Source: Macrostomum lignano
Taxonomy: Eukaryota
DNA: 64,000 bases
Direction: 5' to 3'
Assembly: GCA_002269645.1 (NCBI GenBank)
Contig: NIVC01001989.1
Coordinates: 151,578-215,577, forward strand
Of the stretch, positions 19,200 to 52,247 are shown piece by piece; positions within the stretch are counted from its first letter, which is position 1, and every line of letters starts with the position of its first letter. The notes beneath the pieces are model-generated. The model did no database searches. It saw only the letters and a program-made list of their open reading frames with translations, and was not told the origin of the DNA. The translations under genes and the position numbers were made by a program.

Positions 19200-19828
<629 letters not shown>

Positions 19829-20229
19829 GTCCGTGCAGTTTTCACCCCGTTGAAACAATGGTGCAGAAAAGTTTAAGCCATGAAATCCTTTCCGCCTCTT
19901 TAATGAGGCTTGCAGGCAGAAATGGGAAATTTGGAGAACAAAGAGGCGAACGTTTAGGGAGCCATATTTGGAGGGAAAACTAACAAAATCAGTATTTCTA
20001 ATTAAATAGACAGACCTGCAGCATCAGTAAAAAGAGGCTTCATATATGTACAACAGAAATTTGGCCCTTTTAAATAATTAGCTCGTATAGAAAAGTGAGA
20101 AGTAGATTTTGTTCGAGTTGTCTAGTTTCGGTGCTGGGAGGGCTGAATAAGCGCGCCTGAGATAAGCGCGCATGTGTATTCTTTACGATTTGACATAGAT
20201 AGCGCGCACAGGCAGAAGCGCGCAAACGC

Positions 20230-20457: not shown

Positions 20458-20485
20458 GTGGCGTCGGCAAGCATAGGCTACGAAA

Positions 20486-23400
20486 ATGCCTGGAAGTACG
20501 CCAGCATCGCCAACTAAAGGAGTTGGTAAAACGGTTTCGAGCGACAAAGCACCACCGCTTGCGATCTCATCGAAATCAGTCCAAGCGACAAAGTCGGCAA
20601 CAGCGACAGCGCAGAACCCAAGCGCACAACTATCGAGAGGACAGCAAGTTGACATCGAAAAACTCGATGAAAGTTCGAACTTCCAGAGGTGGTTGGACCG
20701 ATTCACACTGTGCAGCGAACTCAACGGCTGGCAGGACGACACGAAAAACAAGCTGCTGCTGATGAAGCTCAGCACCAAGCTGTACGACGCATTGGCAGAT
20801 CGAGCCGCTCCCAAGAAGCCGGGAGAAAAGAGCTTCGATGAACTGACCAAACTACTGGCCAGCATCCTGGAACCAAAGACGTTCGTCATGGCTGAGAGAT
20901 TCAATTTCCAGCATATCACTCGCACGGCATCAATGAGCATTCGTGAGTATGCACAGCAACTCTGCATGCAGGCAGACAAGTGTCAGTTTGGCCTATCCAG
21001 AGATGAGAGACTGAGAGATCAGCTCGTATTCGGTTTGAATGACAAGGTGGCCATCAGCAAGTTATTGGAACAGGACTTCAGCACTCTCACGTTTGAGACA
21101 GCTATCAACATCGCTGAGGCGCACCAGAACCTATCACAAACGCAAATACTAAAGAGTTGCACCAGTCAGCCGCAGTCTTCTGAAGTAATCAAAATTTCAG
21201 CATCGGTGGCCAGAGGCTCCCACTCTACAAGCTCCAAGTGTGGCAATGTGGCACAATGCATGGCTCCAATGGAGGGTGTCCTGCGAAAGGAAAAACGTGC
21301 AACAAATGTGGCATGCAAAACCACTTCGCAACAGTTTGCAAAACGAAATCAACTGGTTTTGGCAAAGGCCGAAAATCGTTCAAAAGCCCGTCAGCATCTG
21401 GTCAATTTAGGCGAGCTGCAGTGTGGCCAAGGACCACAAGCTTTGTAGATGCAAGCGAAGCTGAACAGGAGGATTGTTTTCACATTTGACATCCCGTTGA
21501 TAGCTACACCGTGCCTGTTAGGCTCAGACACACGAGCGGGTCGATGCTTAGCGTGAACGCACAAATCGATACTGGGGCAGGAGTTTCGGTAATGTCAAAA
21601 ACGAACTGGAAACGATTGGGTTGTCCAAAGCTGACACCTACAGACACTGTTCTGACAACATACGCTGATACGCAGATGAAGGTCTTTGGAACACACGACA
21701 CTGAGTTGGAGTACAATGACGAGTTCATTCCAATCACATTCTTCATTGTGGAATCGCAGAGGAACTTTGTTCTGGTTGGCCGAGACAAGCTCAATTTCAC
21801 GCTAAACGCTGTAGACAACAGCTGCACATCGGCAACCCAGTCATGCGAATTTCCACCAGTAACTCTTAAGATCAAGGAAGGAACCACTCCAATTCATTGC
21901 AAACCCAGGCCGCTACCCTTCGCACTCAGAAATCGATCGGTTGCTTGAAGAAGACACCATCAAGCCCGTCAAGTTCAGTGAATGGGCCTCACCAATTGTC
22001 GTGGTCAAGAAACCTTCTGGAAAGCTCAGACTTTGCGTCGACTACAAGGTCACAATCAATTCTCATCTTATCAACGATTCATATCCGATGCCTGCACCTG
22101 ACGAAGTGATTGCAACTGCTGCTGGCAGCCGGATATACACTCGTCTGGACCTAGAGAAAGCTTATCACCAGATCCCACTAGATGAAGCTTCCAAAGAGCT
22201 GACAGTAATGTCAACACCATTTGGGATGTTCGCTTTCAACAAGCTTCCGTTCGGAGTGAAAACAGCACCTGCGATCTTCCAGCGGTACATTAGCCAAGTC
22301 CTACAAGGAATTCCTGGCGTCATTGCCTACGTAGACGACATATTGATATGCGGCAAAGGCGTAGAACAATTGGCAGTTCGTGAGACGGAAGTATTGCATC
22401 GACTAAACCAGCAAGGATTGAAGATCAACACGGCGAAAAGTGAATTCCGCAAGACTTCGATCAAGTTTCTAGGCTACTTATTGGAAGGAGATCAGCTCAA
22501 GCCGGACCCAGCCAAAGTGAAGGCAATCCAGGACATGACACCACCGCAGAACGTTGGCGAGCTTGAATCCTTCCTGGGTCTCGTAAATTTTAGCGGCAAG
22601 TTCATCAGAAACCAAGCTGCACTGACCAAGCCTCTCAATCGACTAAGAAAGAAAAATGAGGACTTCGTGTGGACAAAGGAGTGTCAAATAGCATTTGACG
22701 AAATCAAGGTCACTCTCTCTGATCAATCGAGTCTTCAAATATTTGATCCGGAGAAGCCCATTGAACTGGAATGCGACAGTTCTCAGCGAGCTCTGGGCGG
22801 AGTGTTGACACAAAGCGGTCAAGTCGTGCTGTACATGAGCAAGACTCTGTCTGACGCCGAAACAAAATATTCGCAAATAGAGCGTGAAGGCCTGGCACTG
22901 GTTTGGTGCATTCAAAGATGCCATCGGTTCTTGTATGGCCGGAGGTTCACACTGATAACTGATCACCGGCCCCTCACATACATATTCGCGCCAGACAAAC
23001 AGCTGCCCACCAGAGTTTCAGCTCGACTACAACGATGGGCAATCATACTAGCTGCTTATGACTATGACATACAGTATCGACCATCAAAGCTAATGCTGTC
23101 GGATGCGCTATCTCGACTGGTGCCCGCTAAGCCGAATGCACAGACAGCATCGATCGGACTCCTAGAACCTGACAACCCCTGGGAGCGAGTGCACATTGAT
23201 TTTGCTGGTCCGATAGAGGGCAAGTACCTACTCATCATTGTGGATGCGCACTCGAGCTACCCGGAAGTCTTCATCACGAGCGACATGAAAGGCCGACAGT
23301 CATTTCCAGACTTAGAAGATTGTTCTCACAACAGGGGGTGCCCAAGTGTCTCGTGTCAGACAACGGCCCTAGTTTTGTGAGCGAAGCGGTGACCGGCTGG

Positions 23401-23874
23401 CTCACCCAGATTGGCTGTTCGCACATCACAACGCCCGCCTACCATCCACAGAGCAACGGCATTGCAGAGCAAATGGTGCGAACCGTCAAAGAGACAATCA
23501 AGACCAATGGTTTATCCCAAAGAAGTATTGACAGATTTCTACTGTTCTACAGAGCTGCCAAAGGGAAGCAGCAAGCATCACCGTCTGAGTTGTTGAACGG
23601 CAGACAAATACTCGTAAGACTCCCCATCTCGGAGAGCAGCACTCAGTCCAAGTGGATCCCAGGAGAATCACTCATCTACCGTGCATCGAGTTCTCATGAG
23701 CCACGAACTGTGAGATTCGCCAAAATGCTTGGCAGCAACACAGCAGTCGTCACCACAGAGACTGGACGAAATCTAAAGACCCACCTCGATCAACTACGAA
23801 TCGGTGAGGTACATGAGGCTCACGGGAACTACGGAAATGGGGGATTCCAAGCCCGGTGGCAACGGTCCAAGTGA
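20486..23874 (+). pseudogene. Disrupted gag-pol of the Gypsy element
   Basis: Gag (FQRWLDRF..., ERFNFQHITR, LRDQLVFG), Zn knuckle CPAKGKTCNKCGMQNHFATVC, protease IDTGA, RT WASPIVVV/LCVDYK/YVDD, RNase H CDSS...YSQIERE...TDHRPL, integrase HIDFAGP/SDNGP/HPQSNGIAEQ. Frameshifts near 21250, 21930 and 23300; in-frame TGA at 21487. Confidence 0.95.
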
Positions 23875-24237: not shown

Positions 24238-24690
24238 GTAGTGACACAAGAGCGCAGATCATTTTGACGGTAGTGACACAAGAGCGCAGACCATTTCGAC
24301 GGTAGTGACACAAGAGCGCAGACCATTTCGACGGTAGTGACACAAGAGCGCAGACCATTTTGACGGTAGTGACACAAGAGCGCAGACCATTTCGACGGTA
24401 GTGACACAAGAGCGCAGACCATTTCGACGGTAGTGACACAAGAGCGCAGACCATTTCGACGGTAGTGACACAAGAGCGCAGACCATTTCGACGGTAGTGA
24501 CACAAGAGCACAGACCATTTCGACGGTAGTGACACAAGAGCGCAGACAATTTTGACGGTAGCTTAAACCGTGTCTATTTGTGTAAAGAAACTGACTACGT
24601 GCAGAATACAAGTGTACGGAAGCAGTGTCACAAGAGCGCAGACCATTTCGATGGAAGTGTCACAAAAGCGCAGACCATTTCGACGGTAGA
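24238..24690. repeat. Right part of the 32-bp tandem array (about 10 copies to 24560, degenerate copies to ~24690)
   Basis: Direct reading. Confidence 0.92.
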
Positions 24691-26638: not shown

Positions 26639-26644
26639 TTTATT
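26639..26644 (-). terminator. Polyadenylation signal AATAAA of the lectin-Ig receptor gene
   Basis: TTTATT on + about 20 nt beyond the stop codon at 26663. Confidence 0.55.
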
Positions 26645-26662: not shown

Positions 26663-29600
26663 CTACTCATCATACTCATTCACAAGTACACTAGTGGAGC
26701 CTGCAGGAGTCGATACATTCGCCAGCAGGTCGTACTCATCCTCAACTACTCCAAAGTAAGTTGTAGGAGTCGATGCACTCGCCAGCAGGTCGTACTCATC
26801 CTCAACTACTCCAACGTGAGTTGCAGGAGTCGATACATTCGCCAGCAGGTCGTACTCATCCTCAACTACTCCAATGTGAGTTGTAGGAGTCGATGCACTC
26901 GCCAGCAGGTCGTACTCATCCTTAACTACTCCAATGTGAGTTGCAGGAGTCGATGCACTCGCCAGCAGGTCGTACTCATCCTCAACTACTCCAACGTGAG
27001 TTGCAGGAGTCGATGCACTCGCCAGCAGGTCGTACTCATCCTCAACTACTCCAAAGTAAGTTGCAGGAGTCGATGCACTCGCCAGCAGGTCGTACTCATC
27101 CTCAACTACTCCAACGTGAGTTGCAGGAGTCGATGCACTCGCCAGCACGTCGTACTCATTCTCAACTACTCCGGAGTGTGGCTTGACAATTGGAGGAGTA
27201 CCACTCCCGCGGTGGCATGAATGCCCGTCAACAACCGCTCTCGGGGATTTCTGGGACAGTTTGGACAGAGCAATGAATTCGCTGTTACATATGCCATCCG
27301 CATCAGCTTTGACAGGTAGCTCTTTCGCTGCATTGCGACGACAGCAGAGCAATCTAAACGAGACGCAGAGACCAGAAAAAACCAACAAGCTGCCCAGAAT
27401 GAAGCTCGTTAGAAACTGCGGCAAGCCAAAACCTCCCGGATTGTCGTCTTCTGCAATGGTTTCGGCATTCAAATACATGCCTAATGTGTTAAATAAAAGT
27501 GGTCACCCAGTCAGTCAGTGGTCACCCATGTAGATGACCTGTTTGTACAATATTCTTCGTACAAGCTTAGAGACTAAATGTATAGGCTCGTTCAGACCAT
27601 TTTCAAATGAGACCAGTTTTGGAATGATCATGCGGCTTATACATATTTTTCGTGGCTATGCAAACCAGGAGTGACAATGTTCGTTTGATTCATCATGATT
27701 CACGAAGACCATTCTCACCTTGCGATGGCCTGCCAAGTGTCGAACTGACAGTGTCCAGGATGAGCCCTGACTGATTCACCAGACAATGGACGGACGCCGA
27801 ATCAGCCCACTCCTTCGGAACAATCAGCGAAAACGTGCTGCTTGTGTTACTCGACTGAAAGTGGTGCAGTTTTATATTTCTTATTAGTATGAATGCAAAG
27901 ATAGCTATTTGAATTTTTAGCAAACGAGCCATCCTATACTTGAAGTAGATTATCCTGCAATTGTTCTTTTCGACAAAGAGAATTTCCAACTACTTAAGCT
28001 ATAGAATGGATCCCGAAGCCGACTAAAACAACTAGAATGGGACCTAGATGAGATGTCTTGGCGTTTCTAGTCGATTGTTCTGATAAGTTATCAATTGCAG
28101 CTTTGCTTCTATAGCTTAATTTGACATCCTCTTTGTAGTGATCCGCTAGTTTGGTGTTAGGCGTCGCACTATTGTCAGCGGCTTCCCTCGCCCTCGCCCT
28201 CGCCCTAAGTCGCTGTCTGCCGCTGGTCAGCCTCCCTCCCTTTTTTCTGCCTGTTCTCTGTCGCCCCCCATCTCTTCTCTGGGCTCTTGCTTGCAGCCAC
28301 GAGCTTCTCTGCTGTGGCCTGCTCTGCGTTTCGTTCCTGTCCTGAGATCAAGCTGGCGGCCTGTTTCCCTTGTCAGGTGAGCAAGTCACTTGACAAGTCT
28401 TGTTTTCTCGAAGTCCTAAAGTGCAGTAGACATGTTTACTGTACTTGTTGGCCCATGTTTACAGGAGGAATCACGTGCTTCAGGGCCCTTGCCTTCTCTA
28501 AGGTAATAGGTGACTCATGTTTCTAAAAATAGATAATGAGTCATGCGGCCCTGTGCACTTTACCCGCAGACCCTGCCTTCTCTAAGGCACGAGGTCCGGC
28601 GCACACTGGCGCAGCGGGGATTCCCCTATAAATACGTGCCCCTCACCCTTGGTTCAGTCAAGGAGTTCTTCTTTAGTCTAGTTTTCCAGACTTCGTTCAG
28701 TTGCCCATTTAAGCTATCTGTAATTGGCCTGACTAAACTTAGACGCCGAAGCCTAAGGGAGGCTAACACTGCCTTCTCAGCCACCCGCTGAGCCCGGCGA
28801 GATCTGCTGAACAGGACAGGACGCCTTGTTCATTAATCTTCAGATCTGCACGCTGTGCTGAGTTCCTTGACTTGTTTATTTCGTTCCGACGGGAAGCTCA
28901 CCTCACCGAAGGCCGAGACATGAAGGAACTGGTGGCAGCACTACCGACGCTACTAAGAGCTAATAAGAAAGCTTCCGAGAGAAGAGGCTCGAGACTTAAG
29001 GTAAAGCTTAAGTGACTAAATCGGGAAGCAAAAAGCGATCTACTTCGTTGGTGGCAGCGGTGGGATTCAAAGACCTACCATGCCACCTTGAGACAACCCT
29101 AAGTACTTCATCTTTTATCAATAGTGCACTTTCAGACTTGAGGAAGGGTAGCTGTGGTGCACTGTCGGACCTGAGGAAGGGTAGCTGTGGTGCACTGTCG
29201 GACCTGAGGGAGGGTAGCTGTGGTGCGCTGTCGGATCTGAGGAAGGGTAGCTGTGGTGCACTGTCGGACCTGAGGGAGGGTAGCTGTGGTGCGCTGTCGG
29301 ATCTGAGGAAGGGTAGCTGTGGTGCACTGTCGGACCTGAGGGAGGGTAGCTGTGGTGCGCTGTCGGATCTGAGGAAGGGTAGCTGTGGTGCACTGTCGGA
29401 CCTGAGGGAGGGTAGATGTGGTGCACTGTCGGATCTGAGGAAGGGTAGCTGTGGTGCACTGTCGGACCTGAGGGAGGGTAGCTGTGGTGCACTGTCGGAC
29501 CTGAGGGAGGGTAGATGTGGTGCACTGTCGGACCTGAGGGAGGGTAGATGTGGTGCACTGTCGGACCTGAGGGAGAGTGGCGCACACCTCAAAAGACAAA

Positions 29601-32600
29601 TTAGTCGCTTACAGACACAGATGTCAGACGACTCCGCCCATGCCTATGCTTTAGGTGGCAGGTGTGGGTTGTAGCCAAACAACTTCTGCTCCGAAGAGTT
29701 GGAATCGTGCTCACAGTGAATGTGAATGTGAAGCCAGGCCGCCAATCAGTTTCTGGCGGCTGATTGAACAGCGTTTTGCACGAATCTGCGGGAGATTGTG
29801 GAGACGGTACTTGCACTATCTAGTGGCTATATCTGGACTTGAACCTGTGTCCTTCGGTGCAAGAGAGCAATGTAGGGGACTCGCCCTCTGTAAAACACTG
29901 AACGGTACAAAAAGGCTGAGTGCTATGCAGTTTCACAGTGAGCGCGCACAAATCAACTTCGGTATGCTCTCGGTTATTTGCGACTCCTCCGAAGTTCTCT
30001 CCAGAGAGTAGGCGCACGAAATGCTCCCGCCGACCATCGACTCGTTGACTCGTAGGCTGAACGTGCTGCTGCGAAATTCCAGTCCGTCACCCACGTCAGT
30101 CAACTGCGGGATTCAGTGAATTGAATGTATTGAAGTGCACTTAAGTGTGGTTCATTGTCTTGGGTTGCAATTGGAGTCGACTGGAATGCATTGGAGTGTG
30201 TTGCAGTGCAGCCCAAACTACCTCTTCTGCACCCCAACGAACCACAAAGAGCTGAGGATAAAGTCCCATCCCACTCAACATAAAAATCCCCGACTCGAAC
30301 ATTGTCATGCTTGGTCTCCAAGATCAGCTTCGCCGAGCCAGCTCGATCAATCAGCAGGCAGTGGTGCAGCGGCCTTGGAAACGCCGGCTCGGTGCTGAAG
30401 GTCACCAGCGCTTCGGTCCCCACGACCCACACGGATCCGCCCATGTCCAGATGAACAGCTTTCGGCTTTGCTGCGGAGTATTTTGAGTAAAAATTATTTA
30501 CTTTTTACTTATGCTTCTGCTGCCTAAAATGACTCTTGAGACGCATAAATGATCATGAGCAAACAAATCGCTCAAAAAGAAGAATTCTGTACTCGCAAAT
30601 CGTGTAATTTTTACTGCAGAATACATTAGCTAGATAGGGCTTCGGAGTTTCCTTGACCCAAATGTCAAGCTTCAGAGAAACTATATTTGTTAATTTCATA
30701 CAGTACTAGAACAGACAGGGTCCACGAGATTTGCCCATAGAAGATTTGCCCGCAATGCTTTTTTCCTGCAGCGCATTTTTCCACGTGGCAGATTTTGTCT
30801 GCACTGCCTCCCCAATGCTTAGTAAGTCTTATTAAAGATATTTGGGGAACAAAGCGACATGGAATATGCATGAATTAATAGATGCATGTATATATAGAAC
30901 TGAGTACCTACAAGAAAAATATAAACTTGATATGCAGTTACTATCAATGGGTTTTGATCGGATAAATGTCTTTATTAAGACTTAATAAGCATTAGGGGGC
31001 ATGCAAAATATAGCTGTCACGTGACTAAATGCGCCGCAAGAAAAAAAGCATTTCGGGCAAATCTCGGCAGGAAAAAAACTCGGCGGGCAATTCACTCGCG
31101 GGCAAATTCCACTGCGGACAAAGCTCGGCGGGCAATTCGTCTGCGAGCAATTCTCGTGCTCCCGAACAGAATACTCAGAAATTCACCTGAAACTCGTTGT
31201 TCTAGAACTGGTTGTTAAATAATGAAGCAGTGAAGCACAGCTACCCTCCCTCACGTCCGACATTGCACCACTCCCACAGCTACAATCCCTCAGGTCCGAC
31301 AGTGCACCACAGCTACCCTTCCTCAGGTCCGACAGTGCACCACAGCTACCCTTCCTCAGGTCCGACAGTGCACCACAGCTACCCTTCCTCAGGTCGACAG
31401 CGCACTACAGCTACCCTCCCTCAGGTCGACAGCGCACTACAGCTACCCTACTTAACGTAGGAAAATTAACGATTTGAAAGTGCAGCGAACTTCTTGTTTG
31501 CTTGATTTTCTATTGTAGAAGCACGAATGCATGTACAGAAGAACCGGGCTGCCTACAGATGAACCCGATCGTCCTATTGAATCGGCCACTGGCTCCGCTG
31601 GCGCACCGGAAGCTGCAGTCCAATTGACTGTTGCGAAATCGGCCGTTGATCGTCAGCAGGTAGGCCGCCGCACTGCCTGCGGCTTCCTAAAAATATTGTA
31701 AAAGTCATTCACGTGTACCACTGAAAACTGCTTTTTTAGAAAGCCAGTTCCTCTTTCTCGTTCTGTTTACTGTTTTATAGCTTTTTTCTTTTGGTGCCAT
31801 CCTAAGGGAGCGCTCCTCCTTTCTGGAGACCTCCCTTTGTGCGCCAGTCACGTGGTGGCCCTACTCCCTCTACATGCATCACGTACCAGTTACGCTCGTA
31901 GGTTGGTGCTGCTTGATAACCTCCTGCAAACAGCTTTCGACAAGCAAACATCCTGCAAGCAAACATCCTGCAAGCAAACTTCCAGCAAACAAGCATCCTG
32001 CAAAAAAGCATCCTGAAAACAAACGTCCTGCAAACAAACATTCTGCAAAAACATCCTGCAAACAAACATCCTGCAAGCAAACATCCTGCAAGCAAACATC
32101 CTGCAAGCAAACATCCTGCAAGCAAACATTCTGCAAACAAACATCCTGCAAGCAAACATCCTGCAAGCAAACATCCTGCAAGCAAACATTCTGCAAGCAA
32201 ACATCCTGCAAACAAACATCCTGCAAGCAAACATCCTGCAAGCAAACATCCTGCAAGCAAACATCCTGCAAACAAACATCCTGCAAGCAAACATCCTGCA
32301 AACAAACATCCTGCAAACAAACATCCTGCAAACAAACATCCTGCAAGCAAACATCCTGCAAACAAACATCCTGCAAACAAGCATCCTGCAAGCAAACATC
32401 CTGCAAGCAAACTTCCAGCAAACAAACACCCTGCAAGCAAACATCCTGAAAACAAACATCCTGCAAACAAACATCCAGCAAGCAAACATCCTGCAAGCAA
32501 ACTTCCAGCAAACAAACACCCTGCAAGCAAACATCCTGAAAACAAACATCCTGCAAACAAGCATCCTGCAAGCAAACATCCTGTAAGCAAACTTCCAGCA

Positions 32601-35600
32601 AACAAACATCCTGCAAGCAAACTTTCAGCAAACAAACATCCTGCAAACAAGCATCCTGCAAGCAAACATCCTGCAAGCAAACATCCTGCAAACAAACATC
32701 CTGCAAACAAGCATCCTGCAAACAAACATCCTGCAAGCAAACATCCTGCAAACAAACATCCTGCAAGCAAACATCCTGCAAACAAACATCCTGCAAACAA
32801 ACATCCTGCAAGCAAACATCCTGCAAACAAGCATCCTGCAAGCAAACATCCTGCAAACAAACATCCTGCAAGCAAACATCCTGCAAGCAAACATCCTGCA
32901 AGCAAACATCCTGCAAGCAAACTTCCAGCAAGCAAACATCCTGCAAGCAAACATCCTGCAAGCAAACATCCTGCAAGCAAACTTCCAGCAAGCAAACATA
33001 CTGCAAGCAAACATCCTGCAAGCAAACATCCTGCAAACAAACATCCTGCAAGCAAACTTCCTGCAAGTAAACATCCTGCAAGCAAACATCCTGCAAGCAA
33101 ACTTCCAGCAAGCAAACATACTGCAAGCAAACATCCTGCAAGCAAACATCCTGCAAACAAACATCCTGCAAGCAAACTTCCAGCAAGCAAACATCCTGCA
33201 AACAAACATCCTGCAAGCAAACTTCCTGCAAGCAAACATCCTGCAAGCAAACATCCTGCAAGCAAACTTCCAGCAAGCAAACATACTGCAAGCAAACATC
33301 CTGCAAGCAAACATCCTGCAAGCAAACATCCTGCAAACAAACATCCTGCAAGCAAACTTCCTGCAAGCAAACATCCTGCAAACAAACATCCTGCAAGCAA
33401 ACATCCTGCAAGCAAACATCCTGCAAGCAAACATCCTGCAAGCAAACTTCCAGCAAGCAAACATACTGCAAGCAAACATCCTGCAAGCAAACATCCTGCA
33501 AACAAACATCCTGCAAGCAAACTTCCAGCAAGCAAACATCCTGCAAACAAACATCTGGCTCTCATAAGAAACTAATAAATGTTTCGCCCCTTTTGCTGGC
33601 AAGTATGCCACGAATTGTGAGCTTGTCCTTACTAACAAGAATATCTTAAACCGTTATTAATTTACTGCAACTCACAAACTTGAAATTGCCCACGAGTGGT
33701 TGGAGGCTGCACAGCGGAGTCTTCAGAGTCTGGCAGGGCAGGCAGGCCACCAGCATGGTGCCAGGCCGAAGGCGGTCCAGGCCGACCGCTGAACAGACCG
33801 ACTGGCTGCTGCGGCTGACCAGCTGAACAGCTGCATCATCTGAGAGAGAGAGAGCGCGCACACAGCGCAGTTGATTAGCGGACTCATCATCATATTCTTT
33901 TGAATTCTTTACTCGCCCATTACTTAATATGTTTTCAATTATCACTTCGGTCCCCTGGCCATTCCACTCTCTCACTCGGTGCCATTCCCTCTTCTCTCAC
34001 TCGGTGCCATTCCCTCTTCTCTCACTCGGTGCCATTCCCTCTTCTCTCACTCGGTGCCATTCCCTCTTCTCTCACTCGGTGCCATTCCCTCTTCTCTCAC
34101 TCGGTGCCATTCCCTCTGGTGGATACAAGGGAAAGTTGCCACGCGATGACATGACCTCTTTGCAATCACTGGTAACTGGCTTACCAAAATTGATTTTTAA
34201 TCCAGCGAACTCCAGCCGCTTATCAGTTTCATTCTGCACAAATCTTCTCAGAAGAATAAAGCGAGTCGGCTGCAAATATTGATTTAAATTAAGGTTACGC
34301 ATTTAGATTGATAGTTCTGAAGTTAACGGGATGGGACCTGTGGAATGGGATCGGGATGGGACCTGTGGAATGGGATCGGGATGGGACCTGTGGAATGGGA
34401 CCGGGATGGGACCTGTGGAATGGGACCGGGATTGAACCTGTGGAATGGGACCTGGAGATGGAACCCTGTGGAATGGGACCTGGAGATGGAACCCTGTGGA
34501 ATGGGACCTGGAGATGGAACCCTGTGGAATGGGACCGGGATGGGACCTGTGGAATGGGACCGGGATGGGACCTGTGGAATGGGACCTGGAGATGGAACCC
34601 TGTGGAATGGGACCTGGAGATGGAACCCTGTGGAATGGGACCTGGAGATGGAACCCTGTGGAATGGGATCGGGATGGGACCTGTGGAATGGGATCGGGAT
34701 GGGACGGGGATGGACCGGGAGGGGACCTGTGGAATGGGACCTGGAGATGGAACCCTGTGGAATGGGACCTGGAGATGGAACCCTGTGGAATGGGACCTGG
34801 AGATGGAACCCTGTGGAATGGGACCTGGAGATGGAACCCTGTGGAATGGGATCGGGATGGGACCTGTGGAATGGGACCGGGATGGGACCTGTGGAATGGG
34901 ACCGGGATGGGACCTGTGGAATGCGACCGGGATGGGACCTGTGGAATGGGACCTGGAGATGGAACCCTGTGGAATGGGACCTGGAGATGGAACCCTGTGG
35001 AATGGGATCGGGATGGGACCTGTGGAATGGGATCGGGATGGGACCTGTGGAATGGGATCGGGATGGGACCTGTGGAATGGGATCGGGATGGGACCTGTGG
35101 AATGGGATCGGGATGGGACCTGTGGAATGGGACCTGTGGAATGGGACCGGGATGGGACCTGTGGAATGGGACCTGGAGATGGAACCCTGTGGAATGGGAC
35201 CTGGAGATGGAACCCTGTGGAATGGGACCTGGAGATGGAACCCTGTGGAATGGGATCGGGATGGGACCTGTGGAATGGGATCGGGATGGGACGGGGATGG
35301 ACCGGGAGGGGACCTGTGGAATGGGACCTGGAGATGGAACCCTGTGGAATGGGACCTGGAGATGGAACCCTGTGGAATGGGACCTGGAGATGGAACCCTG
35401 TGGAATGGGACCTGGAGATGGAACCCTGTGGAATGGGACCTGGAGATGGAACCCTGTGGAATGGGACCTGGAGATGGAACCCTGTGGAATGGGATCGGGA
35501 TGGGACCTGTGGAATGGGACCGGGATGGGACCTGTGGAATGGGACCGGGATGGGACCTGTGGAATGGGACCGGGATGGGACCTGTGGAATGGGACCTGGA

Positions 35601-37662
35601 GATGGAACCCTGTGGAATGGGACCTGGAGATGGAACCCTGTGGAATGGGATCGGGATGGGACCTGTGGAATGGGATCGGGATGGGACCTGTGGAATGGGA
35701 TCGGGATGGGACCTGTGGAATGGGATCGGGATGGGACCTGTGGAATGGGATCGGGATGGGACCTGTGGAATGGGATCGGGATGGGACCTGTGGAATGGGA
35801 TCGGGATGGGACCTGTGGAATGGGATCGGGATGGGACCTGTGGAATGGGACCTGTGGAATGGGACCTGTGGAATGGGACCTGTGGAATGGGACCGGGATG
35901 GGACCTGTGGAATGGGACCTGGAGATGGAACCCTGTGGAATGGGACCTGGAGATGGAACCCTGTGGAATGGGATCGGGATGGGACCTGTGGAATGGGACC
36001 GGGAGGGGACCTGTGGAATGGGACCTGGAGATGGAACCCTGTGGAATGGGACCTGGAGATGGAACCCTGTGGAATGGGATCGGGATGGGACCTGTGGAAT
36101 GGGACCGGGAGGGGACCTGTGGAATGGGACCTGGAGATGGAACCCTGTGGAATGGGACCTGGAGATGGAACCCTGTGGAATGGGATCGGGATGGGACCTG
36201 TGGAATGGGACCGGGATGGGACCTGTGGAATGGGACCGGGATTTGACCTGTGAAATGGGATCGGGATGGGACCTGTGGAATGGGATCGGGATGGGACCTG
36301 TGGAATGGGATCGGGATGGGACCTGTGGAATGGGATCGGGATGGGACCTGTGGAATGGGACCTGTGGAATGGGACCGGGATGGGACCTGTGGAATGGGAC
36401 CGGGATTGGTCCTCTTGAGTGTATATCACACAAACGCTAGGTCAGCATTCCGAGCGTGAACTCCCAAAACTAAAGTGGCGCGTGAGATTAGTTCAGAAAA
36501 GGGAGAATTTTCCCAATATTAGGAAGTGAATTTTTTTGCTAATAGCACGAAGGCTCAATTCGATGGACAGCAGCTGACCTTTGGGCACACCGGGCCGCAC
36601 ACGAGTCCGCACTTCACCTGCTGGCGCAGCGGTCCAGAAGGCCGGGCAGCGGCGGTACGGCCGCAAGTAGAAAATTTGTCCACAGCCACAGTGGCTTTGC
36701 AGGAGCCTGACACGGGCTTTAACTGGATTGATCCCGACTGCTCATCGCTGATTAGCACCTCCAAGTTGCTTGCTCTCACCGGAGCTGCTTGTTAGGGGAT
36801 ATGAGATTGGAGCGAAATTATAGCAGCAGACCGGAGAGAAAACATCTTGGATTTCCAGGCTAATCTGACTTGACACTATATACGAGTAGCTACCCTGACC
36901 CAACACCACCCTGACAACCAACCCCTGACCCAGAACAAACCGTCAGGCTGGGCGTGAACCGTCACGGACTGAAGATGAACAGCTCTGGACAGACGGAGCA
37001 GCAGCCATTGGTACCCGAATTCGTCCGGCGCGTTGCCCGAACGGAACGACACGGTGGTCGTGTCGGCCACGGCTCGAACCGAGGCGCTGTAGCATCGCTC
37101 CTCAAATGTGGACGACTGCCAGGCTTCGATCATGTTCAGATTTGAGTGACTGGCACCGGCGCCTGTGCAGGATATTGACGGCGCAGAAAAGAAATGTAAT
37201 ACTCGTATATATGCTGCCGTATATATTTAGATAAGCCAATTTTAAGATACTATTGATTTTACGCTTTTTAGGGTGAAGTAGCCACCCATGAATCACTGGA
37301 TATGGATACAGTACGGAGTTAAGCTTGTGTTCAGAGGGAGATTTGTGCGGATTTTACGACGTAGGCCAGGACATGTGGAGCTCGCAGCAACATCGATCAA
37401 CTTCTAATCAAAGATGAGATATTGCCACTTAATTTGTGCTGCAGTTCATGTCACCAACACACAGCCAAATAAAATGGTACAAAAGTACATGTAGTCCATT
37501 TCTAGCTACTTAATATAACTAGCGATCCCTATTATGGATCAAGAAATGCAACCTACCGTTGAATAGCTGCACCAGCTGGATGCCAATAACTGCTAGCACT
37601 TGTGCAATGGCAATTAAACAGTTAAGAGAAATGCAAACCTGCGACCAAGATCTCGGCTGCAT
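26663..37662 (-). CDS. Type I membrane receptor: signal peptide + F-type-lectin/discoidin-like domain + three Ig-like domains + TM + tyrosine-repeat tail (about 750 aa, 10 exons)
   Basis: Hand-built exons: 37662-37557 (MQPRSW...LIAIAQVLAVIGIQL, phase 1); 37162-36941 (NLNMIEAWQSST...QWLLLRLSRAVHLQSVTV); ~36787-36579; 33839-33694; 31686-31557 (YLLTINGRF..QLDCSFRC); 30470-~30300; 30103-29950 (SSTFSLRV..GGSISCAY); 29785-29613; 27854-27719 (SSTFSLIV..ASVHCLV); 27480-26663 (TM FLTSFILGSLLVFSGLCVSF + tail). All have GT-AG boundaries with matching phases, except that the exon 3/4 phase and the exon 6 donor are uncertain. Confidence 0.75.
26690..27175 (-). repeat. Coding 60-bp VNTR, 8 copies, encoding GVVEDEYDLLASASTPATHV
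   Basis: Frame-preserving 60-bp period inside the last exon; no stops in the coding frame. Confidence 0.95.
28150..29075 (+). mobile_element. Possible LTR-retrotransposon relic (LTR-like segment plus tRNA-Leu primer-binding site) in the receptor intron
   Basis: TGGTGGCAGCGGTGGGATTC (29049-29068) is the reverse complement of the 3' 20 nt of eukaryotic tRNA-Leu(AAG) including CCA. A 10-nt partial copy lies at ~28930 and TATAAATA at ~28627. No second LTR or gag ORF was found. Confidence 0.4.
29124..29575. repeat. 33-bp minisatellite (ACTGTCGGACCTGAGGAAGGGTAGCTGTGGTGC) with alternating 66-bp variants
   Basis: Direct reading; intronic in the receptor gene. Confidence 0.95.
30718..31163. mobile_element. 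MITE-like element with imperfect terminal inverted repeats
   Basis: Left GGGTCCACGAGATTTGCCC...TTTGCCCGCAATGCTTTTTTCCTGCAGCGCATTT versus right AAATGCGCCGCAAGAAAAAAAGCATTTCGGGCAAAT...TTCTCGTGCTCCC. Same right terminus as 9846-10075. Confidence 0.6.
31236..31452. repeat. Inverted short array of the same 33-bp minisatellite as 29124-29575
   Basis: CCTCAGGTCCGACAGTGCACCACAGCTACCCTT is the reverse complement of the 29.1-kb unit. Confidence 0.9.
31925..33555. repeat. 15-bp minisatellite (CAAGCAAACATCCTG), more than 100 copies, intronic
   Basis: Direct reading; the 500+ aa ORFs here are repeat translations. Confidence 0.97.
33955..34115. repeat. 25-bp tandem repeat (CTCTCACTCGGTGCCATTCCCTCTT) x6
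   Basis: Direct reading. Confidence 0.92.
34328..36404. repeat. Mosaic GGAAT-containing minisatellite of 25-bp (TGGAATGGGATCGGGATGGGACCTG), 28-bp (TGGAATGGGACCTGGAGATGGAACCCTG) and 14-bp units
   Basis: Direct reading; intronic. The 600-700 aa ORFs in five frames are artefacts. Confidence 0.97.
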
Positions 37663-38589
37663 CACAATAGCGCTTAACAGAATAGCTTCGACGACTTTAG
37701 GCCCTAACGCTCACGGCTAGAAGATACGGGTAATAAATAACGTTTCTATCAGAATTTAACTTGTGTTTAACAAACATTTTCTGCACCCCGATACTGTACC
37801 AACAGCATGGTCAGCTGACTTATGCAACCAAACAGATGCGCCGGTGTGCAAGCGGCAGAAAGAGAACTTTCAAGTCAGCCCACAGGCTTGCAGATTGTAT
37901 AAGATAATCAAGCTGGTAGCAATTGCTTCAGCTGTGCATGCCTGGCGTGTGAAAGTGGCCAAGACAAGATTTACTCATGGTTTATAGTTTATCACTAGGA
38001 GCCGAAAACGCACTTCGAAGATAGTAAAGCTATCAGTAACACGGCACTTTAGCCAGTCTGTGTTCGAGGCAGAAAAAGTTAAACTACCCACATCGATTAC
38101 AATTATATTTACCAAGGCAAAATCATCAACTGTAAGCCATTCTTAAATCTTATAGATTACTATATACTTTCGACTAGGACTCTAGAAATAGAGATAATTT
38201 GCAAGAGAATATTGTTATTCAAGTATTTAAAAAATCTATAAACAGGATACCTGCTGGCTCGTCAGATCAGGCCTAAATATCAAGCTCATACGATACTCTG
38301 TATGGATAGAATCAATTATCAACAGTGATTTCCACTGAGCTAAGGGTGGTCTGGCCATACCAAGAAGCGAACGCAGAAATGAATTCAGCTCAGGTCAGGT
38401 TGTCATTAATTAACCGTAGGGAATCGTATATATTGAATAAAGTTATTAATACAGCAATTAAATAACCCTACTATTGTTAGCGAATGCTTAATAATTTAAT
38501 TAGAGTGAAGCTCTGTTCTCGGGACGCTAAAACTGGATCCAGTCACGTGATTGGACACCGCACGAATAGAAATCACGAAATATAACGAG

Positions 38590-39230
38590 ATTGGAAACCA
38601 CGAGACTCGAAATCGAAAGATTGGATACCACGTGACTGAAAATCATGCGGTTGGAAATCACCCGATTGGATATCACGTGACTTACCCGATTGGAAATCAC
38701 GTGACTGGAAATTACCCGATTGGAAATCACGTAACTGTAAACTACCAGATTAGAAGCCACGTGACTGGAAATTACTCGATTGGAAATCACCCGATGGGAT
38801 ATCACGTGACTGGAAATTACCCAATTAGAAGTCACGTGCCTGGAAATTACCCAATTAGAAGTCATGTGACTGTAAACTACCCAATTAGAAGTCACGTGAC
38901 TGGAAATTACCCAATTAGAAGTCACGTGCCTGGAAATTACCCAATTAGAAGTCATGTGACTGGAAATTACCCAATTAGAAGTCACGTGCCTGGAAATTAC
39001 CCAATTAGAAGTCATGTGACTGGAAATTACCCAATTAGAAGTCAAGTGACTGGAAATTACCCAATTAGAAGTCATGTGACTGGAAATTACCCAATTAGAA
39101 GTCAAGTGACTGGAAATTACCCAATTAGAAGTCATGTGACTGGAAATTACCCAATTAGAAGTCAAGTGACTGGAAATTACCCAATTAGAAGTCACGTGAC
39201 TGGAAATCACCCGATTAGAAATCACCCGTT
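38590..39230. repeat. 30-bp minisatellite (GGAAATTACCCAATTAGAAGTCAYGTGACT) with an E-box variant in almost every unit
   Basis: Direct reading; exact 30-bp period from 38801 to 39200. Confidence 0.93.
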
Positions 39231-39909
39231 AGGACTAATCTGATTGAAAATATCACTAGAATTCCAATCACACGTTCGCTGCTAAAAATGACAACACATT
39301 TTAAATTTCGCACAAGCCCAGCGCACCATTCAGATTTCCCACCCCCCTAACCTAACACAGATAACTACTGACTAAACCAGCTAGGCATTGTTCCAGAAAC
39401 CTCCGATTCCAAACCATACGCGCAAACATTGTAATAATCGAAATTTGATAAACACAGGGATAATCAACTAACCAATAAAGATAACACACAAAAAAGCGAT
39501 AAACTGAATGGACAGTTGAGCGCCACATCAATTAAAAATCATAGCCGAATCAACAGAGGTCAGCGAGGCCCATAGAGACAAAAACTTGTGCGCGAATGCA
39601 GAATTTGGTTGGCTCATTAACTTTGGCAACTTTGAGTCGGTCAAACATGAGCAAATCTATTCTCATTTATTATAATCAAAGCCTTACAAAGACTTACAAA
39701 GCAGATCAGTCACTTCCAACGAGGGCGGATTATAGAAATACTGTGTACGAATCGAATGAAAACTTATTGTAAAAATGAAAAAGCTTTAATAGGCTTTCAG
39801 TAGTTTGAATTTTCCATATTTTTATCACGAAAGCTAGTCGCAAACTGCTACAATTAGTAATTTGAAGGAGCATGTTTATTAGATCGGCTTTGTTAACTAG
39901 ATGGGTGTT

Positions 39910-40642
39910 CTGGTGGGTTCATTTTGCAGGTTGAAGAGTTCCGGTGGGTTCATTTTGCAGGTTGGGGAGTTCCGGTGGGTTCATTTTGCAGGTTGAAGAG
40001 TTCCGGTGGGTTCATTTTGCAGGTTGAAGAGTTCCGGTGGGTTCATTTTGCAGGTTGAAGAGTTCCGGTGGGTTCATTTTGCAGGTTGAAGAGTTCCGGT
40101 GGGTTCATTTTGCAGGTTGAAGAGTTCCGGTGGGTTCATTTTGCAGGTTGAAGAGTTCCGGTGGGTTCATTTTGCAGGTTGAAGAGTTCCGGTGGGTTCA
40201 TTTTGCAGGTTGAAGAGTTCCGGTGGGTTCATTTTGCAGGTTGAAGAGTTCCGGTGGGTTCATTTTGCAGGTTGAAGAGTTCCGGTGGGTTCATTTTGCA
40301 GGTTGAAGAGTTCCGGTGGGTTTATTTTGCAGGTTGAAGAGTTCCGGTGGGTTCATTTTGCAGGTTGAAGAGTTCCGGTGGGTTCATTTTGCAGGTTGAA
40401 GAGTTCCGGTGGGTTCATTTTGCAGGTTGAAGAGTTCCGGTGGGTTTATTTTGCAGGTTGAAGTATTCCGGTGGGTTCATTTTGCAGGTTAGGGAGTTCC
40501 GGTGGGTTCATTTTGCAGGTTGAAGAGTTCCGGTGGGTTCATTTTGCAGGTTGAAGAGTTCCGGTGGGTTCATTTTGCAGGTTGGAGTATTCCGGTGGGT
40601 TCATTTTGCAGGTTGGAGTGTGCCGGTGGGTTCATTTTGCAG
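39910..40642. repeat. 31-bp minisatellite (GGTGGGTTCATTTTGCAGGTTGAAGAGTTCC), about 23 copies
   Basis: Direct reading; lies downstream of the MGAT1 stop. Confidence 0.96.
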
Positions 40643-40999
40643 GGTGTCTCGATGATTAATTCTACAATGTTTAAGCTGACTAACTTTTTAAATTAAAAAT
40701 ATAAACAGATTTTATATCCTATTTTAATGAACCAGTATATCAGCTTAAAGCCTACCGTTAGCATGCACAAAGCACAGCTGAAAGTCAATGAACTAACATA
40801 GCGCATTATGAGTTTAAAAGCATCAAACGCAGTATTCGCTAAGAGAAATGGAAAATAAGAAATCAGTAATAACTGCGAGAGATCAGAAATAGGCAATTTT
40901 TTAAAACACTAATTTCATAGCCGGTTACAGACACTCGGATAATAAAGGCAAGCCAATGAGATTAATTGAGGCAAATCTAAAAAACAACAAAGCAATCAA

Positions 41000-43900
41000 T
41001 CACTTCCAAGTGACATCGTAGCCTTTCCACGGCCGGCCGGGCGCCAGGTGGATCCGGCGGCCGGATTTGAACACGGGCACAACGCCGCTATAGGCGCAGC
41101 GGGCCACGCCGTCTTTGAAGTCCGGCATGATGTCCAGCCGCTTGGCCATGGCAACGAACTCTTTTGGCCCGTTGTACTGGACACGAACCTCGGCTGGCGC
41201 GCCGGATCCGACTCCCAGAGCAATGTCCAGCGTCACCGATGGCAGTTTGTACACCCGGTCCAGGTAATAGGAATCGTAATTAGATTTCAACAGGTAGCTC
41301 AGATCCATAGCAGCGTAGTTAACCGGCCGTTTGCTCAGCTCAATGAAGCGCAGGTATTTATCAAAATACAGGCCGTTGCTGACTCCCACCCGGCCGAATG
41401 TGTAGCTGCGGGACACCTCGGGGCGGAGGCAGGCTCGGCCGCGCCGGACGCCGGCCTTGCGCATGTGATCGTCCCAGTAGGCAGCCGGCCAGCCTGTCCG
41501 CAACTCCAGCCAGGTTGGCCGGAGCAGCATCCAGCCCAGGCCGGGGAAGAAGTCGGTCCGGTAGAACAGGTCGGATCGGGCCGTGTCGATCAGGTTGGAC
41601 TTGCCGTTGTCGTTCCAGGCCGACACGCACCACACGGTGGGGTCCTGGGCCATCACGCGGCCCAGATGGATAAAATAGTCGAAAAAGTCTGGCGCTATGT
41701 CCAAATCGTCTTCGACAACAATAGCGGCTGTGTAGTTCATTGTAAGGAATACCTTGATTGGGGAACAGTGAAAGTCATTTAACATAGTTGCTAGGCAATT
41801 AGCATCTGCTATAACTACGAAGGTAGGATTCTAACCTATATTTTGTGCGTCAGAGTGCCAATATAATTGATGCGTCACATGACTCATACCAATGCATTGC
41901 ATAACGATTCTGTGATTGGAATTTACGAATTTGAGCTTAAACAGACTTTTATAAATGCTGTTATGTTTTAAAAATTTAAAGTTTATTAATCTGCTAAAAA
42001 AATTAAACTACTACCTTTAATTATAATTCTACCACTATTCAGCCGCGTTGCGTACTAACCGCTACCAACTATGCTTAACTCACAGCGTTGGCGGATAATA
42101 CGCTAACCCACTTAGCTAAGGGGTTCCAATATACTGGTCCATTACATTCGACTGCCTGACCCTACTTAACCTAAACCTAAATCATGGCAAGTCAAATGGA
42201 TGGCGGTCAGCTACGCAAAGACAAACAAGAAAATGTATTGTTCTCACTTGATCAAACGCCCATCGAAAGTGCCTGGATATGTAATAATAACCAACAAGAG
42301 CTCTCTCCTTGGCCGGCACACTGATTGGGCTCAGGTCTGGCTGGCGAATGTGCACCAGCTTGTTACCGTAGGACTGAATAACGCTAGCCGTTTCAGCGTG
42401 CCCGCAGTCCTGTGACACTATAACGTGAAACTGGTGCGGCCCGGAGGTCGGCATGTACTTGAATATCTGGTCCAGGCTTCTGCGCACAGTTGGCCGATTG
42501 CAGGCGATCACCAGCACGGCGATGCTGGCTGGCAGGCTGTCCGCTGGGCTCAGCGTGGCCATCACCGGCCTGGGCGAAGTCGGCTCACCGATGCCACCGG
42601 CTACAAGATTAACAGAGAAATGTACGTAGAAGGTGAAACCCGATGAAAACGGTGCCTAGACAAAGAAGCGTCCCAGATTCGTTGCAGGTAGCACAGGTAA
42701 AATAGGAAAGAAGTGACTCTGGACGACTCTAAAAGTCGTTCTAAGAGTCAATTTGAGGCGCTGTATTTTCTGCGACTCTAAAACTCTGGGGCTGTAGACT
42801 TGTATCTGAGGCGTGATAGAGTCGCTGTAGAATCACATTTTGCATTTATAACAACTCCATTTAGTCTAATTGAGTTAGTAGAAAGTTGAGCGCTAACACG
42901 ACTCTTGGACGACTTTGCGACTCTTTTACGATTCTGCAACTCACGTGATGCTCTCGTGAATAATTAAGGCATTAAGCCATAGTAAAATAACTACGGCCAA
43001 CTCAGCATTTTTTGTGTAAGCTACTTTCAGTAGTGAGCTTAAAAAGAAGCATTTTAACGTATTTTAGGACAGGACTCATTTTTTGGTCCTCTGACCCCCA
43101 TCTGAACCCCTTCACCCGCGTCTTTCGACACAGAATCTCTGCCCCAATTTTTATTGCCCTCCTCGGTGTTGCGGCCTAACGCTGGCATGTACATTCTCAG
43201 TGGCTTTGGCTTGGCTAATGTACATCACGGCTGCACCAATAGCCAGTTGTTTGCGTCTGCGAGTCACTCCAACTACCGGTCTTCATAAAATAGCTTACGC
43301 ATTCTTCCTCACTACTGAGCTGAAAGTAGAGAAACTTTTAAAAGGATTTAGCACTGCCAATGAGTGACTGTAAGGATTAGCACTGCCAATGAGTGACTGT
43401 AAGGATTAGCACTGCCAATGAGTGACTGTAAGGATTAGCACTGCCAATGAGTGACTGTAAGGATTAGCACTGCCAATGAGTGACTGCAAGGATTAGCACT
43501 GCCAATGAGTGACTGCAAGAATTAGCACTGCCAATGAGTGACTGTAAGGATTAGCACTGCCAATGAGTGACTGTAAGGATTAGCACTGCCAATGAGTGAC
43601 TGCAAGGATTAGCACTGCCAATGAGTGACTGCAAGAATTAGCACTGCCAATGAGTGACTGTAAGGATTAGCACTGCCAATGAGTGACTGTAAGGATTAGC
43701 ACTGCCAATGAGTGACTGTAAGGATTAGCACTGCCAATGAGTGACTGTAAGGATTAGCACTGCCAATGAGTGACTGTAAGGATTAGCACTGCCAATGAGT
43801 GACTGTAAGGATTAGCACTGCCAATGAGTGACTGTAAGGATTAGCACTGCCAATGAGTGACTGTAAGAATTAGCACTGCCAATGAGTGACTGTAAGGATT

Positions 43901-51903: not shown

Positions 51904-52247
<344 letters not shown>

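Follow-up and report, generated by a model that had tools for sequence, protein, structure and literature searches.

A candidate eleven-exon receptor gene with an F-type-lectin-like head and a tyrosine-repeat tail in Macrostomum lignano

Gene structure at the locus

The DNA studied here, called the window throughout, is the terminal 64 kb of the 215,577-bp contig NIVC01001989.1 of the flatworm Macrostomum lignano (assembly GCA_002269645.1, Mlig_3_7), with window position x lying at contig position x + 151,577. On its minus strand, between an ATG at 37662 and a TAG at 26665-26663 (approximately contig positions 178,240-189,239), we identified 11 coding exons which splice into a single uninterrupted open reading frame (ORF) of 794 amino acids (aa), with no stop codon or frameshift over 2385 nt (Table 1). 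Comparison of sequences makes it very likely that these exons form an intact protein-coding gene and that the architecture read from them is real. The encoded protein is predicted to be a type I membrane protein which carries, from the N-terminus, a signal peptide, a head domain resembling the F-type lectins, three further domains (D1 to D3), a transmembrane segment, and a cytoplasmic tail that contains a tyrosine-bearing repeat.

An earlier note on this DNA, made from the letters alone, had proposed a gene of ten exons at this place. All ten are real, with GT-AG borders and the phases it gave, and GT-AG is found at every splice border of the current model; the count was one short, an exon at 34269-34185 having been missed. 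Its description of GC-richer exons scattered among minisatellite-filled introns was borne out, with a GC content of 0.51 to 0.62 for the exons in comparison to about 0.46 for the window, and with the intronic arrays recovered by Tandem Repeats Finder. One 33-bp minisatellite unit is present in opposite orientations in intron 9 (29124-29575) and intron 6 (31228-31449), thus bracketing exons 7 to 9, and the units of the two arrays are reverse complements of each other except at one base.

The missed exon, exon 4, was found by a tblastn search of the paralogs described below against the window, which recovered the exons of the earlier note and in addition aligned 34278-34192 (TRFILLRRFVQNETDKRLEFAGLKI) at 60% identity to the paralog PAA49974.1. 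It is bordered by the acceptor atttgcag/CCG at 34269 in phase 0 and by the donor TTTG/gtaagc after 34185 in phase 1 (the slash marks the exon border). Without this exon, exons 1 to 3 make up one ORF and the later exons another, out of register by one base, and the phase clash between exon 3 and the exon that followed it in the ten-exon model is resolved because the 85-nt exon lies between them. Two repairs suggested before, an extra T near 36675 and a weaker acceptor at 33822, are accordingly given up, as the missed exon yields a clean ORF. The extra T had drawn on the second half of exon 3 scoring +10 bits in another frame and on the likeness of FYLRPY to RFILLRR of a paralog, but it was rejected when the genuine TRFILLRR exon turned up at 34269-34185, the inclusion of which also made the acceptor at 33822 unneeded.

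Two further borders called for a choice between sites. Exon 3 may use a donor after 36618, which gives a protein of 781 aa, or one after 36579, which gives 794 aa, both in phase 0; it most likely ends at 36579, a donor which is preferred because the longer form retains C168, a cysteine which does not vary among the paralogs. At 206 nt the exon compares with 218 nt in PAA49974.1, and the two genes have the intron at an identical alignment column. An internal acceptor for exon 3 at 36722 was rejected, being without a pyrimidine tract and of poor score. The donor of exon 7 (exon 6 in the ten-exon numbering), which had been left undecided, is now settled as the weak, in-phase TAT/gttgag at 30280/30279, just beyond which the codon score changes sign, from +14 to -14 bits, and a paralog intron lies within 4 alignment columns of it. 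A strong donor at 30221 was tried for the same exon and rejected as being out of phase and adding a stretch which scores -14 bits.

The codon score is a codon-usage log-odds score which was trained on the exons of the two flanking genes in the window, for MGAT1 and an acid phosphatase, with 242 control ORFs as the null. Exons 2 and 5 to 8 score in the top 1% to 2% of the null ORFs, exon 2 being in the top 1%.

Table 1. Coding exons, signals and tandem repeats of the gene, in window coordinates
Feature	Position	Strand	Remarks
Exon 1	37557..37662	-	Start codon; signal peptide (MQPRSWSQVC...); phase 1 at its end
Exon 2	36941..37162	-	First part of F-type-lectin-like head (AWQSST...GYQWLLLRL...VTVHAQPD)
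Exon 3	36579..36784	-	Middle of head; preferred donor AAG/gtcagc after 36579
Exon 4	34185..34269	-	85 nt; last strands of head (PTRFILLRRFVQNETDKRLEFAGLKINF); phase 0 in, phase 1 out
Exon 5	33676..33839	-	First half of cysteine-rich D1 (…ACLPCQ…)
Exon 6	31557..31686	-	Second half of D1 (AAAYLLTING…LDCSFRCAS…)
Exon 7	30280..30470	-	First half of Ig-like D2 (VWVVGTEALVTFSTEPAFPRPLHHCLL); weak donor TAT/gttgag
Exon 8	29950..30103	-	Second half of D2 (SSTFSLRVNESMVGGSISCAYS); donor T/gtgcgc splits a Tyr codon
Exon 9	29613..29785	-	First half of Ig-like D3 (CKTLFNQPPETDWRPGFTFTFTVST…HTCHL)
Exon 10	27719..27854	-	Second half of D3 (SSTFSLIVPKEWADSASVHCLVNQSG); 136 nt
Exon 11	26663..27480	-	Stalk, transmembrane segment, cytoplasmic tail; stop TAG 26665-26663
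AATAAA polyadenylation-like signal	26639..26644	-	19 nt past stop; consensus match only
Exonic 60-bp minisatellite	26702..27172	-	Tandem Repeats Finder: period 60, 7.8 copies, 94% matches; encodes eight EDEYDLL units
Intronic 25-26-bp minisatellite	34328..36406		About 80 copies; most of intron 3, between exons 3 and 4 (Tandem Repeats Finder)
Intronic 15-bp minisatellite	31941..33555		About 108 copies; intron 5 (Tandem Repeats Finder)
Further intronic minisatellites	33968-34117, 31228-31449, 29124-29575		Tandem Repeats Finder

The paralog family and support for the gene model

A search for paralogs, which had been called for before, was made by a HMMER scan of 1.84 billion representative proteins with exon 2 alone (73 aa). 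Six matches were obtained, five of which come from M. lignano, namely four paralog proteins and one garbled model (E-values 8e-6 to 4e-4); a bacterial repeat protein with SCAB-Ig and AIR9 matches (working label P0121) was discarded as spurious, only its YQWLL stretch being matched. One annotated relative, PAA49974.1 (P0126; BOX15_Mlig012130g1), is an 804-aa 'hypothetical protein' with three near-identical copies under Mlig034318. The annotated family includes PAA46231.1, PAA64249.1 and PAA89871.1 (Mlig034318g4, g3 and g1), and UniProt holds the family entries A0A1I8HXW3, A0A1I8J6H5, A0A1I8HM06 and A0A1I8GPA9. UniProt models account for the matches P0122, P0127, P0124 and P0125; most of them bear the name 'Ig-like domain-containing', and P0122 is automatically named 'IRS-type PTB domain-containing protein'. 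By its sequence the protein is a member of this Mlig012130/Mlig034318 group, a family seen so far in Macrostomum only, the taxonomic range of which is bounded by a collection that appears to be without other Macrostomum species (the next-best MGAT1 matches reach 57% identity or less). The architecture, which had not been recognised from any described family, is not unique, as the annotated M. lignano paralogs (PAA49974.1 and others) share it; the family proteins are uncharacterised, and none is named in the literature searched.

The garbled model among the matches, A0A1I8JMH0 (P0123), is a 218-aa automatic translation which hops between frames of exons 2, 3 and 5 and also translates part of the intron-3 minisatellite. 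From its sequence it plainly derives either from this locus or from an almost identical copy, as represented in the older assembly ML2; it differs from the window at several residues, which makes a second gene copy probable. The UniProt name of this entry, 'Ephrin RBD domain-containing', was set aside, no Pfam domain being present in the model.

Given the abundance of short ORFs and of GT and AG dinucleotides in repeat-rich DNA, the exons could in principle be open frames and splice-like sites that line up by chance, and such a reading could also point to the marginal similarity of the Ig-like halves and to two word-indexed searches with the spliced protein (5.8 billion proteins) which gave zero matches at E <= 10. 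This null result probably reflects a limitation of the searches, both of which reported 8000 candidates, possibly a cap, rather than an absence of relatives, because a paralog with an E-value of 2e-47 sits in the same collection. In a BLASTP comparison the spliced protein aligns with PAA49974.1 at 166 bits (E 2e-47), with 30% identity over 537 columns and collinearity from exon 2 to exon 10. We reconstructed the PAA49974.1 gene on its own contig, where it has 13 coding exons, and the phases of its first ten introns are equal to those of all 10 introns of the present gene, with 6 of the 10 positions in identical alignment columns and the other 4 within 1 to 5 columns. Because the alignment is collinear and the introns are conserved in position and phase against an annotated protein of the same species, a chance chain is ruled out for practical purposes.

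Single exons show the same agreement. The start of exon 1 resembles MQSSRPTDRC of the paralog, and the first exons of both genes end in phase 1; exon 4 is 85 nt long with equal phases in the two genes, and exon 10 is 136 nt in both. Exon 5 shares its intron column with PAA49974.1, with the LPC motif and the cysteines of D1 invariant in the paralogs. Exon 7 shows 40% identity to P0127 by tblastn, and the Tyr codon split T/AT at the junction of exons 8 and 9 is split alike, in the same column, in PAA49974.1. Exon 9 aligns with YECNTVFHVPTRERWIEG…HTCSL of PAA49974.1 and with P0124, and exon 10 aligns with VAIVCQVNQSGV of PAA49974.1. Every family-invariant cysteine is retained in the copy studied here.

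The lectin-like head

The head is predicted, from family profiles and a paralog model, to be a galactose-binding-like jelly roll of about 170 aa which is closest to the F-type lectins, and we regard the F-type-lectin likeness as likely. Across four paralog lineages the head is 33% to 34% identical to that of the present gene, with 31 invariant positions. When the family head profile, in which the present gene is included, was compared with the PDB, the sole significant match was the striped-bass F-type lectin FBP32 (3cqo, E 5.1e-5), both lectin domains of which were matched, and the pneumococcal fucolectin-related protein 2j1r was placed lower in the list. The structural evidence concerns a paralog model and not the spliced protein itself: AlphaFold gives the head of the shorter paralog P0124 a predicted local distance difference test (pLDDT) value of about 75, and a Foldseek search with this model returned 3cqo_A (FBP32) first (E 2.6e-5), followed by the F-type lectin domains 2j1r, 3lei (lectinolysin) and 1k12 (eel agglutinin) with TM-scores of 0.53 to 0.62, and thereafter by APC10, CBM32 and discoidin-type domains, of which the first two scored almost equally high. 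The AlphaFold model of the full PAA49974.1 is poor (pLDDT 36.5) and gave a Foldseek list of the same kind. Pfam PF22633 was not reached by the protein, and P0124 scored 17.1 bits against it in comparison to a cut-off of 27.8. The galactose-binding fold with F-type lectins as the nearest relatives, as had been suggested before, is upheld by the FBP32 profile match and by the Foldseek result for P0124.

The sugar-binding motif of F-type lectins is HX24RXDX4(R/K), with a triad of His52, Arg79 and Arg86 (PMC5712786). Aligned to the paralogs and FBP32, the copy here reads F-R-S where the paralogs have F-H-[ST], and Q-P-D-A-P-V-R where they have R-x5-R, so that of the three basic residues only the last Arg is kept and the other two are substituted; the equivalence of the His is deduced from a loop which HMMER aligned with a 3-residue offset. 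The fucose-binding His had been reported as apparently absent, and this holds for the present copy and fails for the paralogs, which keep it.

Domains between head and membrane

Each of D1 to D3 is encoded by an exon pair with a phase-0 intron inside and phase-1 introns between the pairs, as had been noted, and the phases are equal to those of the PAA49974.1 gene. D2 and D3 align with eight equivalent paralog modules which have two invariant cysteines, and share the pattern W..G....F.V.T...P.P.H.C.L ... S.F.L......I.C.V..Q.G. The best PDB match of the D2/D3 profile was domain 2 of nectin-4, a C2-set immunoglobulin (Ig) domain (E 0.0044), with weaker matches to an Ig light chain, SIRP-alpha and nectin-3. 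In the paralog P0125 the Pfam family C2-set_2 (PF08205) scored 21.0 bits, exactly the cut-off, and single modules across the family reached at best E 0.047 (C2-set_2) and 0.062 (Ig_3); neither the protein here nor its single domains gave an Ig match in Pfam, and a BLAST comparison between the Ig-like halves inside the protein found marginal similarity. The Ig-like regions of the AlphaFold paralog models are mostly beta. The first invariant cysteine of D2 and D3 adjoins the position of the C-strand Trp in the nectin-4 alignment, not strand B, and the canonical B-F disulfide and C-strand Trp are absent from the two domains, which would make them atypical if they are Ig domains. D1 is cysteine-rich, carries an L-P-C motif, and showed no PDB match by profile and a weak hhalign match to D2/D3. 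Of the three Ig-like domains proposed earlier, D2 and D3 thus stand weakly, as C2-set-like from sequence, through the nectin-4 match and PF08205 in P0125, and D1 has no detectable relative.

The nectin-4 match, the listing of nectin-3 and the multi-domain type I layout might suggest a nectin-like cell-adhesion molecule, the tail of which only anchors the protein to cytoplasmic partners. The head of a nectin is a V-set domain and not a lectin-like jelly roll, the match is marginal, and the protein ends in NEYDE with no evident PDZ-binding C-terminus, and we consider this possibility very unlikely.

Transmembrane segment and tail

Two hydrophobic segments only were found, the strongest at aa 8-34 as an N-terminal signal and the other at aa 542-569 (window 27424-27341), followed by RR; together with five N-x-S/T sequons in the ectodomain they are consistent with a type I protein, and the signal peptide and single transmembrane segment of the first description are thereby supported. 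After the transmembrane segment come about 55 unique residues and then eight in-frame 20-aa units GVVEDEYDLLASASTPATHV (aa 626-781), with VLVNEYDE as a degenerate ninth motif at the C-terminus, in agreement with the kinase-less tyrosine-repeat tail described before. The frame in use is the single gene-strand frame that stays open through the array, and the repeats would be translated if the last exon is used, because no stop codon intervenes.

In Pfam the whole protein matches HGAL (PF15666) at 35 bits in comparison to a cut-off of 27, a match which, from the sequences compared, is best read as a resemblance of motifs and not as membership in that family. Human HGAL reads EDEYELL around Y148. 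Its tyrosines pY128 and pY148 are 20 residues apart, form an approximate immunoreceptor tyrosine-based activation motif (ITAM), and dock SYK (PMC11518702). The consensus of the immunoreceptor tyrosine-based inhibition motif (ITIM), [SIVL]xYxx[IVL], is absent from the repeats here, the residue at Y-2 being Asp in every one. The tail of PAA49974.1 carries VVYAQV, a fit to the ITIM consensus, and, 26 residues further towards the C-terminus, TEYTEI, which fits the consensus of the immunoreceptor tyrosine-based switch motif (ITSM); tyrosine motifs thus recur in the family.

The tail could instead be a sorting signal, by which an endocytic or clearance receptor would be constitutively internalised by AP-2 together with its ligand. 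The consensuses YxxPhi and [DE]xxxL[LI] of such signals fit YDLL and the acidic dileucine DEYDLL of each repeat, a lectin-like head suits the capture of cargo, and neither the Asp at Y-2 nor the spacing is that of a standard ITIM or ITAM. Short motifs of this kind match by chance often, however, one copy is normally enough and leaves eight unexplained, by profile the tail comes closest to the SYK-docking region of HGAL, and the tail of the paralog carries ITIM- and ITSM-like rather than sorting motifs. A sorting function therefore seems unlikely to us, and a phosphotyrosine function of the tail is preferred.

Surroundings of the gene and its absence from the annotation

The GenBank record calls no gene within window 31003-41002, the stretch of the locus which was checked, and exact look-ups of the terminal-exon ORF, the 794-aa model and the 781-aa model returned no record. 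The Mlig_3_7 assembly was built from PacBio, Illumina and 454 data, and its repetitive fraction is more than half, with simple and tandem repeats making up 15% (PMC5730564). Its GenBank gene models derive from RNA-seq-based transcript assemblies, and the submitted annotation was filtered to exclude repeat-overlapping transcripts (PMC5730564). The receptor gene is probably missing most simply because this filter dropped transcripts which overlap repeats.

The gene is flanked by an MGAT1 gene with three coding exons (41003-44716, minus strand), of which a 276-aa ORF (41003-41830, minus strand) matches M. lignano MGAT1 BOX15_Mlig029797g1 at 100% identity, and by a histidine acid phosphatase gene (Pfam His_Phos_2; 55085-60250, minus strand). 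Just downstream of its 3' end lies a long-terminal-repeat-retrotransposon-type coding region (20477-23871, plus strand), in which Pfam identified a gag-like DUF7083, a reverse transcriptase, an RNase H and an integrase, and after which comes a 32-bp minisatellite (24238-24561). Two long ORFs at 10390-12991 (plus strand) match the two halves of a rhodopsin-family G-protein-coupled receptor (Pfam 7tm_1, E 3e-15 and 2e-11), split by a stretch at 11453-12272 which has several open frames and a minisatellite-like appearance, and the second of the ORFs includes a poly-Gln run. At 61173-62041 a tandem repeat within a GC-rich region has several open frames on both strands (…LQDRLLPQASAGQAAAPSLCRTGCCPKP…), and an adjoining ORF (…LLYNAETWTLT…), with no match in Pfam, resembles the C-terminal part of a reverse transcriptase of the long interspersed nuclear element type. 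Long perfect microsatellite-like arrays with a 12-bp period occupy 19200-19980 and 51900-52130 and translate as (SIYL)n and (LTYL)n. An Rfam scan of the window gave no match.

Possible function and points for and against it

The explanation which we favor overall, comprising the gene, its architecture, the lectin head and a phosphotyrosine tail, is given a probability of roughly 0.55, and phosphotyrosine signalling as the mechanism, taken by itself, is put forward tentatively. In this scheme the head would bind an extracellular ligand, with the Ig-like domains serving as a stalk. For the paralogs with their His/Arg/Arg triad the ligand would probably be a fucosylated glycan, and for the present copy an altered ligand specificity is proposed because the triad reads Arg/Gln/Arg, the ligand then being an altered glycan or something other than a glycan. 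Clustering driven by the ligand might lead acidophilic kinases of the Src or Syk type to phosphorylate the eight E-D-E-Y-D-L-L motifs, and the tail, presumably disordered and with its motifs 20 residues apart like pY128 and pY148 of HGAL, could then act as a multivalent docking scaffold for Src homology 2 (SH2) domains, in which the number of docking sites would be set by the exonic minisatellite.

Several results weigh against this explanation. The gene model for the present copy rests on sequence comparison; the codon scores of exons 1, 9 and 11 are unremarkable relative to the 242 control ORFs, the score itself is partly driven by GC content, and antisense frames of real genes score well too. 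Two donors are weak (gttgag and gtgcgc) at places where PAA49974.1 has gtaag. By itself the protein has no lectin or Ig match in Pfam or, by phmmer, in the PDB, HGAL being its sole Pfam hit, and the domain calls come from family profiles and paralog models drawn from about four distinct sequences, with the Ig-like regions of both AlphaFold paralog models of low confidence (pLDDT < 50). The HGAL score is reached only by summing the repeats, one or two of which score 13 to 15 bits, and the spacing departs from the canonical ITAM (YxxL/I-x6-8-YxxL/I), as the YDLL motifs have a period of 20 residues, which leaves 16 from the end of one motif to the following Tyr. The array can also be read through without a stop in two opposite-strand frames. 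All 9 of the 9 variants among the repeat units are nonsynonymous and none is at codon position 3; because every variant changes an amino acid, there is no sign of purifying selection on the array, which is probably young.

Some of these results would also suit a silent or decaying duplicate in a hidden polyploid, in which the tail would be a neutral in-frame minisatellite and the ligand site of the head would be lost. Such decay could be read from the substitution of 2 of the 3 triad positions kept by the paralogs, the two weak donors and the poor codon scores of exons 1, 9 and 11, the repeat variants without constraint, and the missing annotation in window 31003-41002, in an assembly whose duplicated blocks total 180 Mb (PMC5730564). 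Against it, 2385 nt in 11 exons are free of stops and frameshifts, every invariant cysteine and GT-AG site is kept, an AATAAA is found just past the stop codon, and the missing annotation is accounted for by the repeat filter. We hold a decaying copy to be rather improbable.

On the side of an intact phosphotyrosine receptor, a wider and quite speculative extension, which we think rather improbable as a whole, is that flatworms might have evolved, independently of the Siglecs, their own counterpart of paired immune receptors in this Macrostomum family, with a head of the fucose-lectin type on an Ig-like stalk common to its members. Some members (PAA49974.1) would then have inhibitory tails of the ITIM/ITSM type, and the present copy would have an activating, multi-ITAM-like tail, the valency of which could be changed quickly via the exonic minisatellite, and a head that has drifted from the recognition of fucose.

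If the favored explanation is true, a lectin family whose known members are mostly soluble would gain a branch of membrane receptors, and candidate receptors for self/non-self discrimination or microbe sensing would be available in a tractable flatworm with transgenesis and RNA interference. A coding minisatellite which multiplies a tyrosine docking motif would be a simple means for evolution to tune signalling valency. The locus also indicates that the M. lignano annotation can miss intact genes with tandem-repeat exons, and further receptors whose tails are repetitive may be absent from it for the same reason.

Comparison with known systems

The closest relatives are the family paralogs, which share with the present gene the head, the cysteine-rich domain, the Ig-like repeats, the transmembrane segment, and the exon plan with its phases, at 30% to 34% identity and with the invariant residues in common. 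The differences are in the number of domains after the head (three here in comparison to four in PAA49974.1), in the head triad (R/Q/R in comparison to H/R/R in the paralogs), and in the tail, where an eight-fold EDEYDLL array stands in place of the one ITIM-like and one ITSM-like motif of PAA49974.1.

With the F-type lectins the head shares the core ..QSS..., W(W/L)..(D)L....V..V.V..R......R....E(V/I). The spacing from His to Arg is longer than in HX24R, and the contiguous Cys-Cys of the Anguilla agglutinin (AAA) is absent from the head. Most F-type lectins are soluble or are joined with CCP, CTLD or pentraxin domains, not Ig, and the combination of an F-type-lectin-like head, Ig-like domains, a transmembrane segment and a tyrosine tail is not among the architectures in the review of the F-type lectins (PMC5712786).

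The nectins align with D2 and D3 in the F-strand ..L.C.V.. motif and in the S.F.L strand that precedes it, and differ in that D2 and D3 are without the B-strand cysteine and have a cysteine at the place of the C-strand Trp; the heads also differ. HGAL/GCSAM, like the tail here, has acidic tyrosine motifs of the E-D-E-Y-x-L-L type placed 20 residues apart, and it is a small lipid-anchored cytosolic adaptor of vertebrates in comparison to the type I receptor predicted here, with which it is not homologous.

In overall plan the family resembles the CD33-related Siglecs, which have a membrane-distal lectin head, a stalk of C2-set Ig domains, one transmembrane segment and tyrosine motifs, and the end of PAA49974.1, VVYAQV ... 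TEYTEI, resembles the Siglec pair of an ITIM and a TEYSEV-type motif. Siglecs bind sialic acid via a conserved Arg of their V-set Ig head, whereas the head here is predicted to be a jelly roll; the two are unrelated in sequence, and any likeness would be convergent.

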